This document shows positions 55,025 through 60,855 of a stretch of DNA of 64,000 nt, piece by piece. Where the stretch lies: sequence record NC_070956.1; one strand, written 5' to 3'. The first letter of the stretch is position 1. Every line of letters starts with the position of its first letter. Under the pieces are notes generated by a model, which was not told the DNA's origin, did not search any database, and saw only the letters and a list, made by a program, of their open reading frames with translations. A program made the position numbers and the translations under genes.

Positions 55025-56626
55025 GTGAGTACCATTATCCGAGTTCTTAAGGATTACTCCGAAGAACAATTACTTCCTCAAAATCTCTTCAACCAGATTC
55101 TCGAGGGTACGGGGTATATTCCGGAAATGGATGATGAGCGGTTCTATACTGCAATCTATCCCCATTTCGAAAACTACGACCAACGACACGACAACTGCAC
55201 AACACTCCCGATCTACCTGAATGACCACGACTTCCGAATCGAAGAAGATCGTGAACGTATCGTGCAAGCCCTTCGTACCGAGTATGAAGGTAACACATTC
55301 GATACGGTTGCAGTTTGTTCACCCAGCTGCGGTAAGTATCGCGGTAACATGTATCTCAACTCTGGGATTGTCTGTGACGTTTGTGGCGAGACACCAAGTC
55401 GTCCACTGAGCGAACAGATCGAGACCAAGGTTTGGTTGAGAACTCCACCCAGGGTTTCTGGTTTCCTGTCACCGGCTATATATGAGGTATTCCTCAGTAA
55501 GCTCAAAACCAAAACACCGAAAATCAATTTCGTTCAGTATTGGATGGATGAAGGTTATCGGAGAGACAAACGGTTCCGTGATCCAGTAGGTGAAACACCG
55601 GCGTACAAAATGGCTCAGAAGCTCAATGCTTTCAGTAGTGCCATTGGTATCGACTTCGGGTACAATAATTTTATCGATAACATCGATACGATTATCAATG
55701 CAGCAGTCACCCAAGACTTCATGGGGATCCTCGATCTCAACGAAGTACAACGTGATCACTGCACCCGGTTCTGGGCCAAGTATAAGGGGTTTGCAGTTAG
55801 TAACTTCCTTCCGCTTCCGAACAAGATTGCCACGGTAATCGAATCGGATCAACGTGACCGTTATGTCAACAAGGAAAAGACTGATCTGGAAAAGATCTTC
55901 TTTACCATAGCAGATATGTATCACGAAATGGATCATCGTTCAGTTCAGAACGAAGTTCTGTTCGGTAAGAACTATTTCGAGATGCAGGCGGTGATGCTCA
56001 AAGTGATGAAAGAAATTCTCTTTAAGAAGAAGGGGATGTTCCGATATCACGCAGGGGCTGGTAAGCTGCCATTTACTGGGCGTTCCATCATTACCGGTGA
56101 ATCAGGCGTCTGTCGTTCTGATACCGTGGTGGTTCCCTGGCTCTATGGCATCACCTGTTTGAACCATCATCTGACCAACTGGTTGTACCGTCGCGGCTAT
56201 ACACCCAAAGCGGTTAAACGGATCATCCGTGAATCTGCCAACTTCCGTCACCCAGTGATAGAAGAGTTCTTTGACTGGGTAGAGAACAACCGTTATGCTG
56301 TGGCGACAGTAGGTCGTAACCCGTCGATTCAGTTCTTGTCGTCAAGGACTTTCTTCATCAAGTTCAACCGGGATATTGAGGATAAGTCTATTCGTATCCC
56401 AATCACCTGCGTGAAAGAATTTGGTGCTGACTTCGATGGGGACCAGATGTACGTATGGTTCATTCCTGACCTGTTCGGTAAAGTTGCTGGTTACGCCAAC
56501 TTCGGCCATCAGCAAATGCTCGACCCAAACAAACCGTTCCGTACCAGTCGGTTCGCAACTCGCGCCAAGAACGTTCTTCTCAACCTCAACTCGCAATTAT
56601 TGGACGAGCCAATAGCGGAGGATTAA
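55025..56626 (+). CDS. non-virion RNA polymerase beta'-like N-terminal subunit (phiKZ gp55-like)
   Basis: Zn-binding CSPSC...CDVC; GRSII; RNPSI; catalytic ADFDGD. Confidence 0.92.
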   Translation: MSTIIRVLKDYSEEQLLPQNLFNQILEGTGYIPEMDDERFYTAIYPHFENYDQRHDNCTTLPIYLNDHDFRIEEDRERIVQALRTEYEGNTFDTVAVCSPSCGKYRGNMYLNSGIVCDVCGETPSRPLSEQIETKVWLRTPPRVSGFLSPAIYEVFLSKLKTKTPKINFVQYWMDEGYRRDKRFRDPVGETPAYKMAQKLNAFSSAIGIDFGYNNFIDNIDTIINAAVTQDFMGILDLNEVQRDHCTRFWAKYKGFAVSNFLPLPNKIATVIESDQRDRYVNKEKTDLEKIFFTIADMYHEMDHRSVQNEVLFGKNYFEMQAVMLKVMKEILFKKKGMFRYHAGAGKLPFTGRSIITGESGVCRSDTVVVPWLYGITCLNHHLTNWLYRRGYTPKAVKRIIRESANFRHPVIEEFFDWVENNRYAVATVGRNPSIQFLSSRTFFIKFNRDIEDKSIRIPITCVKEFGADFDGDQMYVWFIPDLFGKVAGYANFGHQQMLDPNKPFRTSRFATRAKNVLLNLNSQLLDEPIAED

Positions 56627-56631
56627 TAATA

Positions 56632-57297
56632 GTGATCAATGTAACAAGCGCGTTCTCAATGGGTATCGGTGGTAGCATGTCGAAAGCCGCTGCCGATGTT
56701 TATAACCAAACTCTGACTTCGATATATGACGGGATGTCGAGTCTGGGTGGTTGGTTGGGTGGCGCTGTCCAATCGGTTGTCCAAAGCCATGAAAACTTCA
56801 TGAACTCTAACATGTGGGAGTTCAGTAAGCGGATTGGTAAAGACGGTCACTATGTTGGACGCTTCGATGTAGGTTACCTGTCGGAAGTGGGTTATCAACA
56901 ACAAGCTGTCGGGTTGATGCGGAATTACATCATGGCTAACCCCAAGATGATGGAACTGTATGAAGCCGATCGCATATCCGGTTATGATGGTGAAATCTCT
57001 GATCTCTGTAGCGGGATTGGTCGTGATAACTACTTCTATAACCGTGCTGTTGATGGTCTGATGCGTATCGAAGATGATGAAGCGGTGCGTACTCACTACG
57101 CCACATCTCTCGACAAGTATACCCACTTGTCAGCGATGGAACGTGTGGACATCAAACGTACCTGGGCGGCTAGCAATATTCATATTGCTAAGAACCTCTT
57201 TGACCCAAGTAGTATTTCTGGCGGGAAGATTCTTTCTGTAGAGGAAGTTGAAGCTATCCAGAAACAAATGGAAGAAGAAGCGGGTGACGCCCAGTAA
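56632..57297 (+). CDS. conserved hypothetical protein
   Basis: 221 aa, GGAGG RBS, terminator at 57303-57331. Confidence 0.75.
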   Translation: MINVTSAFSMGIGGSMSKAAADVYNQTLTSIYDGMSSLGGWLGGAVQSVVQSHENFMNSNMWEFSKRIGKDGHYVGRFDVGYLSEVGYQQQAVGLMRNYIMANPKMMELYEADRISGYDGEISDLCSGIGRDNYFYNRAVDGLMRIEDDEAVRTHYATSLDKYTHLSAMERVDIKRTWAASNIHIAKNLFDPSSISGGKILSVEEVEAIQKQMEEEAGDAQ

Positions 57298-57366
57298 TAG
57301 GTGGGAGCTAACCGGGAAACCGGTTAGCTCTTCCTTTATATAGTTATTTTTTTTTAGGAGTGTTAT

Positions 57367-57699
57367 ATGACCCCCGAAATTATCCATGAAGACAGTGTTG
57401 TTACCGCATTCAAAGTGAATGACCATCTCTACGGCGTGCACCCCAAGAACCTTGAAGTGGGGACTTATCAAGGTGTGGTCAAGTTCCAAAAAGGAGATCC
57501 GGCGATAGAAGAGAATGGTTTGACCTTGGAAGCACTACTCGCGATCTGTATCAGTCGGCTGGATAGTTGCAATCAAGGTAACTTCAAATGTCTCCATAAC
57601 GATCTCGCAATCGAACATATGAAAGCTGCCAAGGTAGCTCTCGAAGAAAGACAGTCCGATCGCAAGAACCGTTTTGTACTTGCTACCGATAAGGTGTGA
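57367..57699 (+). CDS. tad1: Tad1-like anti-defence sponge protein
   Basis: KFQKG...NGL..EALLAIC..RL...N.GNF...HN..A..H...A...LEER...R..R.V..T closely follows the Tad1 family pattern. Confidence 0.78.
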   Translation: MTPEIIHEDSVVTAFKVNDHLYGVHPKNLEVGTYQGVVKFQKGDPAIEENGLTLEALLAICISRLDSCNQGNFKCLHNDLAIEHMKAAKVALEERQSDRKNRFVLATDKV

Positions 57700-57700
57700 T

Positions 57701-58186
57701 ATGAAATTTGGTTATTCAAAGTTAATGTTGGATCTTGGATCAGCGTCCAGAATCCGCAAAGCGGCCATGAAGGTCATCGAAGGAACCGAGAAAGAAAAGG
57801 ACCAAGCAGTCCTCGACGTAATCAACATCCCTGCAACTGAACTCCACGCTACACTGATGTATGACAAACGTAATCCGGACATCATTCCGGATACCAACCG
57901 TGCATCATATAAGGCAAAGGTAACCGGTGTTGAACGTCTGGGTACGCCAGGTGGTAACTACTACGCTCTGGTACTGCTTTGCGAGTCAGAAGGGATTACA
58001 AAACGGCACGAAGAACTTCTCGAGCAAGGTTTCAAGCATAGCTGGCCCGACCTGAAGATTCACGTTTCACTCAACTATGGTGACCAGGTTACCGTTGCGT
58101 ACCCCATTATCAAGGAAGCCTTCGAGAAGGGTTATCTCCCTACCGAAGTGACCTTGGGTGCCGAGTGCTGGAACGAGTGTCGTTAA
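57701..58186 (+). CDS. acb1: Acb1-like 2H phosphoesterase (T4 gp57B-like anti-CBASS nuclease)
   Basis: two HxT/S motifs (LHATLMY, IHVSLNY); LVLLCESEGITKRHEELLEQGFKHSWPDLKIH resembles the T4 57B/Acb1 core. Confidence 0.82.
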   Translation: MKFGYSKLMLDLGSASRIRKAAMKVIEGTEKEKDQAVLDVINIPATELHATLMYDKRNPDIIPDTNRASYKAKVTGVERLGTPGGNYYALVLLCESEGITKRHEELLEQGFKHSWPDLKIHVSLNYGDQVTVAYPIIKEAFEKGYLPTEVTLGAECWNECR

Positions 58187-58197
58187 GATGGATAAAG

Positions 58198-58224
58198 TTT
58201 CAGGCATATATTACCTAAGTGATA
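58198..58224 (+). promoter_or_regulatory. putative phage early promoter
   Basis: TTTCAGGCATATATTACCTAAGTGATA (contains TATATTAC). Confidence 0.65.
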
Positions 58225-58258
58225 ACATAACCATGTTTAACAATTCGAGGTAACTACC

Positions 58259-58408
58259 ATGTTTGAAGCAATGTCCAACTCCCAAGCTTTCGGTTTCGCT
58301 TTCTTCGGTGCTATCGGCGTAATCGCTGTTATCGCCATCGGTACCAATGAATACTTCAAAGCCAAGAAAGCTCTGAAGCGTCCAATGGCTACTCGTAACA
58401 AGCGTTGA
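58259..58408 (+). CDS. small single-pass membrane protein (49 aa; not in ORF track)
   Basis: GAGG RBS; hydrophobic AFGFAFFGAIGVIAVIAIG then a basic tail; own promoter and terminator (58414-58436). Confidence 0.65.
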   Translation: MFEAMSNSQAFGFAFFGAIGVIAVIAIGTNEYFKAKKALKRPMATRNKR

Positions 58409-58475
58409 TATCAACCCTCTCCCATTGGGAGAGGGTAGTTTCAATTACATTTATTTTTTTTTTGTCGAGGTTCAT

Positions 58476-58889
58476 ATGGCAAATGGTTGCTGTGCAACAA
58501 TGTCCACTGTGGGTTATCTCTACGAACCGTTGGCTCAAATCGACAGGTTAATCGCTTGGTGGTTTGCTAATCGGATCGATCAGTCAGTGATACTCACTGA
58601 TATTCAATCTTACCAATACGTTGTTGCAAGCCATCAGAACGATTTCCGTATTGATGAGTTCCTGCAAGATGTTCAACGTAATCTTCAATCCTACCTCATG
58701 GAATGCTTCGAGGGTGCTGAAGTTAAAGCAACCGCACCTAATTATGAGGAAGGTGGAAAGATGTTCCATCTCCACATCAGTGGGGTAGTAGAACGTAACG
58801 GAGTTCGCTATGATGTAGCAAGTGCAGTTGCACTTAGCGGTAAAACCTTCGAACTTGTTGAAAACGGGAGAAAGAGAATTGCAAGATAA
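58476..58889 (+). CDS. conserved hypothetical protein
   Basis: GAGG RBS before ATG 58476. Confidence 0.72.
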   Translation: MANGCCATMSTVGYLYEPLAQIDRLIAWWFANRIDQSVILTDIQSYQYVVASHQNDFRIDEFLQDVQRNLQSYLMECFEGAEVKATAPNYEEGGKMFHLHISGVVERNGVRYDVASAVALSGKTFELVENGRKRIAR

Positions 58890-59691: not shown

Positions 59692-60855
59692 GTGATCTCT
59701 AGGAGATTAATAGTGAATCCGTCACCAATTTATAAGGCGCTGTGGTGTTCAGACCAACACACCTTACACCCGCACACCCACACCAGACATATCTTAGATA
59801 ACTTGAGTGTCTTTTATTATAAAGACAGCAACTTAGATGAGATATCTCACATCGTCTGGGGTGGGGACTTCTTCCATGACCTGTGCGAGTCCAACGATCC
59901 CAACATGATCCTGGTCCAGCGATGGGTCAAAAACTTTTTGGCAATCTGTCATGAGAAACGTATTCATGTCCGTATTCTGGAGGGGACCTCTTCTCACGAC
60001 TGGGGAATGCCGGAAACCCTAGACATATTGAAACCGAAAGACTCCCCGTATATAAAGTACGTCAAGGAGCTTTCCATCGAGTTCATTCCCGAACTTGGTA
60101 TCAACGTTCTTTATGTCCCGGATAACTTCGGGAAGATAGCATCTGAGACTATCTACGACAGAACAATCGAGCTGATGGCTAACAAGGGTTTAACCCAAGT
60201 TGACTTTATCTACCTCCACGGTGGTTTCAAGTTCCAACTTCCGCCTATCGCCGATAAACACGGAACATTGTACGATGAGGACAAATGGAGTAAGTTGGCT
60301 AGTAAAGCAATCTTCTCCGGCCACATCCACAAACCAGGTAGAAAACACAACATCTACTGTTCCGGTTCTTTCGATCGTATCGCATTTGGTGAAATGCACC
60401 CGAAAGGTGCGTACCGTTTCGAGTTCGGTAAAGATCACTTCAAAGCCGAGTTCTATGAAAACACCAGGGCTCAGATCTATGACAAAATCATGATCACTCC
60501 GGAGATGGAATCACTCGAGCTTTCCATGAAACTCGAGAAATACATTGACGAAAATAATCCGCCAGCCAGGACTCATATCCGAGTGTGTGGTGGTGATTCC
60601 AGTGTAGTGATTCCAGTGGTAGCCAGTTTCAGGGAAAAGTTTCCAAAGTACATTTTCGATTACGAGAATGCTAAGGAAGATAATGTCGAGATCGATGACA
60701 CTCTGTACACTCCCGAAGCGTATAAGGCTATCACCTTAACAGCAGACAACCTGGAAGATAACCTTCTTAACTTCATGGCACCAACACTCCATGAGAATGA
60801 TTGGGTTGACCAGGAACTGTTGAAAGAACTTCTACGAGAGGTGATCAATGAATAA
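59692..60855 (+). CDS. SbcD/Mre11-like metallophosphoesterase nuclease
   Basis: CSDQH, GGDFFHD, EGTSSHD, LHG, SGHIH, GS motifs. Confidence 0.88.
   Translation: MISRRLIVNPSPIYKALWCSDQHTLHPHTHTRHILDNLSVFYYKDSNLDEISHIVWGGDFFHDLCESNDPNMILVQRWVKNFLAICHEKRIHVRILEGTSSHDWGMPETLDILKPKDSPYIKYVKELSIEFIPELGINVLYVPDNFGKIASETIYDRTIELMANKGLTQVDFIYLHGGFKFQLPPIADKHGTLYDEDKWSKLASKAIFSGHIHKPGRKHNIYCSGSFDRIAFGEMHPKGAYRFEFGKDHFKAEFYENTRAQIYDKIMITPEMESLELSMKLEKYIDENNPPARTHIRVCGGDSSVVIPVVASFREKFPKYIFDYENAKEDNVEIDDTLYTPEAYKAITLTADNLEDNLLNFMAPTLHENDWVDQELLKELLREVINE

Follow-up and report, generated by a model that had tools for sequence, protein, structure and literature searches.

The locus described here lies at positions 57367 to 58186 of a stretch of 64,000 nucleotides (nt) from the sequence record NC_070956.1, which is called the window in the following. 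It consists of two small genes, which a first reading of the sequence alone had taken for an anti-signalling cassette of a Tad1-like sponge and an Acb1-like nuclease. Both open reading frames (ORFs), encoding proteins of 110 and 161 amino acids (aa), are present at the claimed positions, and the single base 57700 is the spacer between the stop codon of ORF1 and the start codon of ORF2. The region 56600-58500 has 100% identity with Aeromonas phage LAh10 (MK838116.1, 260,310 bp, genus Ludhianavirus), and the phages D3, D6, and D9 are 97.4-97.6% identical to LAh10 over the same region. LAh10 has been assigned to the Chimalliviridae, i.e., the nucleus-forming jumbo phages (PMC13678102). The pair comprises the following features:

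57367-57699, plus strand: ORF1, predicted Tad1-family gene LAh10_215, 110 aa, ATG at 57367, TGA at 57697-57699, GenBank label 'hypothetical protein'
57701-58186, plus strand: ORF2, predicted Acb1-family 2H phosphodiesterase gene LAh10_216, 161 aa, ATG at 57701, stop codon at 58184-58186, GenBank label 'putative RNA ligase/cyclic nucleotide phosphodiesterase'
57356-57360, plus strand: Shine-Dalgarno-like AGGAG, read from the sequence, 6 nt 5' of the ATG of ORF1

An alternative upstream start of ORF2 would be the TTG at 57674. Eight homologues begin at the position of the ATG at 57701, which is therefore the likely start.

ORF1 is a Tad1-family protein, as judged from profile comparisons and from its predicted fold. 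With the single sequence as query, a phmmer search of the PDB yielded CbTad1, CmTad1, and gp184 of phage phiKZ with E values of 2.7e-4 to 6e-3 (gp184 0.006), and tblastn reached the 'Tad1' of SBSphiJ7 at 1e-3. A word-indexed protein search retrieved only the cluster of ORF1 itself; the wider family came from an exhaustive HMMER search, which found 629 relatives at E<=1e-3. When a profile of 84 relatives was compared with the PDB, the E values were 1.2e-29 for CbTad1, 6e-26 for CmTad1, and 1.4e-23 for gp184. An AlphaFold2 model built on 81 relatives has a predicted local distance difference test (pLDDT) score of 93.2 and a predicted template modelling (pTM) score of 0.80. It consists of four strands (residues 4-8, 12-18, 21-26, and 36-40) followed by two long helices (54-68 and 76-101), and this is the published topology of Tad1, an N-terminal antiparallel sheet of beta1-4 and then two long helices (10.1101/2022.05.03.490397). 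In a Foldseek search of the PDB the best 20 matches of the model were all Tad1 chains (E 1e-6 to 3e-5, query TM score (TMq) 0.74-0.83), and the next match had an E value of 0.38. The proposed Tad1 pattern of the 110-aa protein was therefore recovered at the level of the family profile as well as at the level of the fold. ORF1 itself had no match in Pfam or NCBIfam, and its 110 aa compare with a family median of 124.

The ligand contacts of CbTad1 (10.1101/2022.05.03.490397) were mapped onto ORF1 via the HMMER alignments, and the composition of each column was counted over 81 family members. The mapping from CbTad1 to ORF1 is as follows:

Pocket for glyco-cyclic ADP-ribose (gcADPR) and dinucleotides: H29 to H20, G55 to G43, R78 to R64, F87 to F73, N92 to N78, R109 to R95, R113 to R99; kept, 7 of 11 contacts
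C-terminal lid contacts: G120 to A106, N122 to D108; conservative changes
Adenine-stacking residue: F82 to C68; changed
Phosphate contact: R57 to P45; changed
Cyclic-trinucleotide site: R90 to L76, T97 to E83; not kept
Hexamer-interface positions, including a Trp: K86, A87, V90, A91, and E94 in ORF1; not kept

Three of the kept pocket residues are nearly universal in the family, i.e., N78 (79/81), R95 (81/81), and R99 (74/81). The two changed contacts are in variable columns: the column of F82 contains F in 51, L in 11, and C in 7 of the 81 members, with R, V, and V in the closest chimallivirus relatives, and the column of R57 contains P in 37, V in 13, and I in 10. Because both positions vary within the family, they are not strictly family-defining. 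It had been proposed that Cys and His substitutions distinguish the pocket of ORF1. This applies to C68, which is located at a known contact, and it does not apply to C75, H84, and H77, which are not at known contacts and are the commonest (C75, H84) or second commonest (H77) residues of their columns. The roles of the trinucleotide site and the hexamer interface have been defined for Tad1 (10.1101/2023.11.15.567273), and both are properties of CbTad1 and CmTad1 rather than family-wide ones; the Trp position of the hexamer interface is A91 in ORF1, and its column contains A in 42 and W in 14 of 81 members. As the residues of both sites are absent, ORF1 is probably devoid of cyclic-trinucleotide binding. 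Its smallest probable assembly is the interlocked dimer from which the ligand pocket arises, and the pattern of residues points to a dimer-type sponge for gcADPR, and perhaps for dinucleotides, not to a trinucleotide binder.

Compared with CbTad1 and CmTad1 (PDB 7UAV/7UAW/8SMD/8KBB-8KBH), ORF1 is thus likewise a small phage protein with a homologous sequence, the same predicted fold, and the pocket residues H, R, F, N, R, and R. It differs in being shorter, in having Cys instead of the stacking Phe and Pro instead of R57, and in lacking the residues of the trinucleotide site and the hexamer interface.

ORF2 is an Acb1-family 2H phosphodiesterase rather than a generic 2H or LigT enzyme, according to both its profile matches and its modelled structure. 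It matches the Pfam family Acb1 (PF23474) with 55.3 bits (E 8.1e-15, cut-off 27), whereas the match to 2_5_RNA_ligase2 (PF13563) has 17.1 bits (E 0.006) and stays below the cut-off of 27. All 31 homologues of ORF2 carry PF23474. A profile of these 31 homologues retrieved only three sequences from the PDB, all of them Acb1 (7T26 of Erwinia phage FBB1 with 1e-9, 9Q2G/9Q2Y with 3e-9 to 2e-7), and no entry for LigT was found in this search. The AlphaFold2 model (pLDDT 94.7) gave a congruent result in a Foldseek search of the PDB: the best matches were the phosphodiesterase of Burkholderia phage BCSR5 (9q2y/9q2g, E 8e-7 to 6e-6, TM 0.71-0.73), followed by Acb1 of FBB1 (7t26/7t27, E 2-4e-5), and the top five were all Acb1-type enzymes. 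Generic 2H enzymes, i.e., a plant cyclic phosphodiesterase (CPDase), Usb1, and LigT-like proteins, had E values of at least 1.2e-3, which is 100-1000 times worse than the values for Acb1. The top named matches in BFVD were 'Anti-CBASS protein Acb1' (CBASS, cyclic oligonucleotide-based anti-phage signalling system), including those of Edwardsiella phage pEt-SU and Yersinia phage fHe-Yen9-04. Both family assignments of the sequence-only reading have thus survived independent profile and fold tests.

The HAT and HVS motifs that had been seen in the 161-aa protein were confirmed as H49-A-T51 and H121-V-S123. All 31 homologues have H49, T51, and H121, and at least 90% of them have S123; because of this conservation the motifs are not a chance match. 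The catalytic tetrad of Acb1 has been described as HxT/HxT (PMC9117128), and the tetrad H49/T51/H121/S123 corresponds to it, with Ser for Thr in the second motif. Further conserved residues are Y5 (invariant), E155 (at least 90% of the 31 homologues), and W157 (invariant among the 8 closest), and the PDB alignments end before the C-terminus. ORF2 therefore shares with the solved enzymes of FBB1 (7T26/7T27) and BCSR5 (9Q2G/9Q2Y) the family PF23474, the 2H fold, two H-x-T/S motifs, and a similar size, and it differs from them by a sequence identity of only 19-21% and by HxS instead of HxT in the second motif. The likeness to Acb1 that had been noted for ORF2 therefore holds. The specific likeness to T4 57B is only one at the level of the shared family, because the T4 protein is not a named match among the matches listed for ORF2.

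The distribution of the pair was surveyed with tblastn in 50,697 phage records. A Tad1-like match lies immediately upstream of an Acb1-like match in 18 distinct deposited genomes of phages from five host genera (13 Aeromonas phages, Pseudomonas phage OBP, Serratia phages Yubaba and Sureiya, Klebsiella phage N1M2, and Shewanella phage SXP01), and the same arrangement is found in 3 metagenome contigs. In every locus inspected the order is chimallin, the beta' subunit of the non-virion RNA polymerase (nvRNAP), a gene for about 220 aa, Tad1, Acb1, a small hydrophobic ORF, more genes, and last an SbcD-like gene. The stop codon of Tad1 and the start codon of Acb1 are separated by a gap of 1-9 nt or overlap in 6/6 inspected loci, i.e., LAh10 with its 1 nt and five relatives. 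The identities of 12 relatives to LAh10 are 36-52% for Tad1, 40-61% for Acb1, 59-79% for nvRNAP beta', and 58-75% for the SbcD-like protein. The identities of the pair track those of the flanking core genes, which fits vertical inheritance, and from the sequence comparison the pair looks as if it has been inherited together with the block and has evolved faster than its neighbours. The 18 genomes should not be counted as independent events, and the arrangement probably arose once and was then inherited, instead of having been assembled repeatedly.

Outside this group, no Acb1 match adjoins the Tad1 homologues of Bacillus, Agrobacterium, and other phages, and many Acb1 homologues occur without a Tad1 match. 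A special form of the pair is represented by two proteins of 241-245 aa, AH04_67 of Erwinia phage AH04 (L008:4725-5450 in our numbering of loci) and the metagenome protein P0169, in which a degenerate Tad1-like domain is fused in frame to Acb1. The first about 88 residues of the fusion match the Tad1 family alignment in hhalign with a probability of 87% (E 3.7e-6) and lack the pocket residues. This in-frame fusion of a Tad1 remnant and Acb1 has been kept in two diverged sequences.

From the gene structure, the family membership of both proteins, their catalytic and pocket residues, the synteny, and the tight coupling, we infer a model for oligomeric state, ligands, time of expression, and anti-defence effect. 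It seems probable that the two translationally coupled genes of LAh10 are a cytoplasmic counter-defence pair against immunity that is based on nucleotide second messengers, in which the sponge would cover Thoeris and the nuclease CBASS. Both genes would be expressed from one transcript after infection. The free-standing Tad1-like protein would sequester the Thoeris signal gcADPR, and possibly cyclic dinucleotides, in the pocket at its dimer interface. The Acb1-like enzyme would open the 3'-5' bonds of adenosine-containing cyclic di- and trinucleotides of CBASS by a metal-independent acid-base catalysis with His and Thr (Ser). Together, they would counteract signalling immunity, against which a nucleus that shields the DNA is of no help. 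The proposal of a sponge-plus-eraser module is upheld as far as the two families, their coupling, and the recurrence in 18 genomes are concerned, the latter probably representing one ancestral arrangement. As ORF1 has no trinucleotide site, a division of labour is likelier than a joint action of both proteins on one set of ligands.

The idea that the phage nucleus does not block second-messenger immunity agrees with the literature, as gp184 of the chimallivirus phiKZ (PDB 8Y6V chain I) also contains a Tad1 domain (PMC13282480, PMC12676376), and for both phages the same need to counter signalling immunity beyond the reach of the nucleus can be presumed (PMC13282480). gp184 is anchored by its N-terminal part, which is wedged in the capsid, and cleavage by the head protease frees the C-terminal Tad1 part for injection (PMC12676376, PMC13282480). 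In contrast to gp184 with its 230 aa, ORF1 of LAh10 is a Tad1 domain alone, is encoded at a different locus, and is located beside Acb1. ORF1 aligns only to residues 155-221 of gp184 and the profile of its family to residues 101-227 of 230, and a capsid-anchoring N-terminal extension like that of gp184 is absent from the 110-aa protein. Therefore, the Tad1 protein of LAh10 would have to be made after infection. A tblastn search of the LAh10 record revealed only one Tad1-like place. In phiKZ, AntiDefenseFinder has detected only Tad1 (PMC11724313).

Another system for comparison is phage T4. Its acb1 and acb2 genes are neighbours. T4 resembles LAh10 in having a sponge, Acb2 (Vs.4), and the nuclease Acb1 in one genome (PMC12657218; 10.1101/2025.07.12.664507), and T4 has been described to contain anti-defence islands (PMC11724313). 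The difference is that the sponge of LAh10 is a Tad1-like protein, which has an unrelated fold and for which the first known target was Thoeris. As T4 encodes both Acb1 and Acb2, there is in principle already a precedent for a phage with a sponge as well as a nuclease (PMC12657218).

Several observations weigh against a functional pair directed at Thoeris and CBASS. ORF1 stays below the threshold of the Pfam family Acb2_Tad1_hairpin (PF24729), which is reached by 10/84 of its relatives. In ORF1, 2 of the 11 gcADPR contacts of CbTad1 are changed (F82 to C68 and R57 to P45) and two lid contacts are altered, so its ligand could differ. For ORF2, the aromatic base-stacking residues, the adenine-reading Glu, and the lid residues of Acb1 could not be mapped reliably, as the numbering of PMC9117128 disagrees with that of the PDB chain. 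In Edwardsiella phage pEt-SU the slot contains Acb1 and no Tad1 gene, and in Erwinia phage AH04 the Tad1 part has decayed; therefore, Tad1 and Acb1 are not obligatorily linked. In addition, about a quarter of the sponge homologues that have been tested experimentally (19/84) inhibited none of seven systems (10.1101/2025.08.24.671296). For Tad1, Leavitt et al. found that 10/10 diverse homologues inhibited Thoeris (10.1101/2022.05.03.490397).

The first of the alternative explanations concerns the meaning of the adjacency. Both proteins might work and yet be neighbours without any functional reason. They would then go back to a single ancestral insertion event in the chimallin/nvRNAP block, with vertical inheritance afterwards and with independent function and loss of each gene. 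This is possible, if on the unlikely side: the identities of both proteins track those of nvRNAP beta' over the 12 relatives, pEt-SU and AH04 exemplify the separate loss or decay of Tad1, and elsewhere Tad1 homologues occur without an adjacent Acb1 match and many Acb1 homologues without a Tad1 match. However, the tight stop/start coupling has been retained at 40-60% protein identity, the in-frame fusion has been maintained in two diverged sequences, and anti-defence genes are known to cluster (PMC11724313). A very improbable alternative is that ORF2 is a 2H enzyme for RNA-end processing, of the LigT or 2',3'-cyclic phosphodiesterase type, so that the pair would not be an anti-signalling unit. 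LigT and 2'-5' RNA ligase-like 2H phosphoesterases indeed share the superfamily fold and the H-x-T/S chemistry with ORF2, there is the weak match to 2_5_RNA_ligase2, generic 2H enzymes are among the Foldseek matches with E values of at least 1e-3, and PHROG 755 as well as most GenBank records use the label 'RNA ligase'. These labels are older than the Acb1 family, however, and the difference between the two Pfam matches, the retrieval of Acb1 entries only in the profile search of the PDB, the Foldseek distance of 2-3 orders of magnitude to LigT and CPDase, and the coupling to a Tad1-family gene all speak against this possibility.

The remaining alternatives concern the ligand of ORF1. It may have a shifted specificity and bind a signal other than 3' cyclic ADP-ribose (3'cADPR) or cyclic GMP-AMP (cGAMP), e.g., another cyclic nucleotide or another signal derived from ADP-ribose of an Aeromonas defence system. 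The loss of the stacking Phe and of R57, the missing trinucleotide site and hexamer interface, the variability of the F82 column especially among the closest chimallivirus relatives, and the wide ligand diversification of sponge families, with homologues that hit none of the seven systems (10.1101/2025.08.24.671296), are compatible with this view. We regard it as unlikely, as ORF1 keeps the polar residues of the pocket core (H20, R64, N78, R95, and R99) together with F73, and as all diverse Tad1 homologues of the Thoeris study were active (10.1101/2022.05.03.490397). A further idea, which is more speculative still, is that the Tad1-like protein of this clade is no canonical gcADPR/cA3 sponge and has been re-tuned, probably as a dimer, to another signal of the host, and that it acts physically or kinetically together with Acb1, e.g., by ligand handover or masking; the AH04 fusion would then be a fossil of this interaction. 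The counter-defence pair with a Thoeris sponge and a CBASS nuclease thus remains our preferred interpretation.

The surroundings of the pair contain the following features:

55025-56626: nvRNAP beta'-like gene, upstream neighbour of the pair
56632-57297: gene for a 221-aa protein, PHROG 3254 (function unknown), directly upstream of the pair
57303-57332, plus strand: terminator-like hairpin right after the stop codon of the 221-aa gene, 13-bp stem with 7 G-C pairs
58259-58408, plus strand: small hydrophobic ORF of 49 aa downstream of the Acb1 gene, putative third gene of the transcript
58414-58436, plus strand: terminator-like hairpin, 10-bp stem with 7 G-C pairs, 3-nt loop, followed by a weak T-run
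59692-60855: SbcD-like gene, downstream neighbour of the pair

The location among nvRNAP and sbcD genes was thus correctly recognized in the sequence-only reading, and chimallin is found further upstream: in the LAh10 record about 6 kb separate the pair from a tubulin-like gene on its upstream side, and nearer to the pair is a gene for 662 aa that is chimallin in the relatives. The gene for the 221-aa protein, which has no Pfam match, adjoins nvRNAP beta' in all relatives with 52-66% identity and behaves like a core gene of the block. The interval between nvRNAP beta' and Tad1 takes insertions. In Aeromonas phage PS1 an HNH endonuclease gene has been inserted upstream of Tad1 (PS1_0055, L015:3589-4632), and of two metagenome contigs (L003:4169-4666, L004:2737-3699) one contains an HNH gene and the other a 165-aa gene of PHROG 14325 (function unknown). 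The extra genes upstream of Tad1 in the relatives are thus an HNH endonuclease and a PHROG of unknown function, and none of them is recognisable as a further anti-defence gene. A different neighbourhood of Acb1 was observed in Yersinia phage fHe-Yen9-03, a jumbo phage without chimallin (L010:1-5900, g100-g109). Its homologue g106 lies between genes for the metabolism of nicotinamide adenine dinucleotide (NAD), encoding NadM/ADP-ribose pyrophosphatase and nicotinamide phosphoribosyltransferase, and a SIR2-family gene, and this region looks like an NAD+-reconstitution and anti-defence island.

The terminator that had been placed upstream of the pair at 57303-57331 is a real hairpin, which extends to 57332. 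The region 57296-57366 folds with a minimum free energy (MFE) of -26.8 kcal/mol (z -4.5), and 0/200 shuffled sequences were equally stable. A hairpin is found at the equivalent position in five relatives (L004, L005, L006, L007, and L011), and in the six phages including LAh10 the MFE of the hairpin 3' of the about 220-aa gene is -16.5 to -32 kcal/mol (z -3.1 to -6.5). The conserved position together with unrelated sequences of the stem suggests that the structure is under selection, either as a terminator or as a processing site. The two-gene unit has its 5' boundary at this hairpin. At the other end, a gene for 44-55 aa occupies the same slot downstream of Acb1 in most relatives examined; AerS_266 has an extra gene between Acb1 and the small ORF, and in SXP01 the small ORF is not annotated. 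The 49-aa ORF of LAh10 has no Pfam or PHROG match, and it may, with some uncertainty, be the last gene of the Tad1-Acb1 transcript, in which case the hairpin at 58414-58436 is a possible 3' boundary of the transcription unit. A promoter had also been proposed at 58198, and it was rejected. It is only a 9/12 sigma-70-like match, and a sigma-70 scan found such matches to be no commoner than in shuffled sequence, so the promoter is unsupported. An 8-base string at 58207-58214, which we presume to be similar to early promoters of phiKZ, is present three times in the window compared with 1.1 expected occurrences; as 11/100 shuffles reach three, this is not significant, and the string was not used.

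Both families have been recognized before in single records. The GenBank record of Aeromonas phage AerS_266 labels the two orthologues 'Anti-Thoeris, immune evasion protein' and 'Anti-CBASS, nuclease', and they are not discussed in the accompanying paper. UniProt already names several orthologues of ORF2 Acb1. Among N1M2_39, SXP01, OLIVR5, and PDB 7UAV, Tad1 homologues carry the label 'ABC transporter ATPase' and Acb1 homologues are labelled 'RNA ligase' or 'structural protein'; these labels look like annotation errors that were propagated between records. In the literature covered by our search there was no paper on a conserved Tad1-Acb1 operon in Chimalliviridae, and recent reviews list Tad1 of phiKZ as the only anti-defence protein that has been described in jumbo phages (PMC13282480, PMC12676376). 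The two genes thus belong to known families, their arrangement is conserved and has so far not been discussed, and the locus is not a new kind of system.

The analysis of this locus corrects three widespread labels, namely 'hypothetical protein', 'ABC transporter ATPase', and 'RNA ligase'. As Tad1 is present, absent, decayed, or fused to Acb1 in the same slot, the phages form a natural series in which the co-evolution of a sponge and a nuclease can be followed. The analysis also reveals a predicted Tad1 and Acb1 operon within the chimallin/nvRNAP block across a clade of nucleus-forming phages of Aeromonas, Pseudomonas, Serratia, Klebsiella, and Shewanella. Such an operon fits the idea that signalling immunity, i.e., Thoeris and CBASS, is the main threat that remains for these phages once the nucleus shields their DNA.

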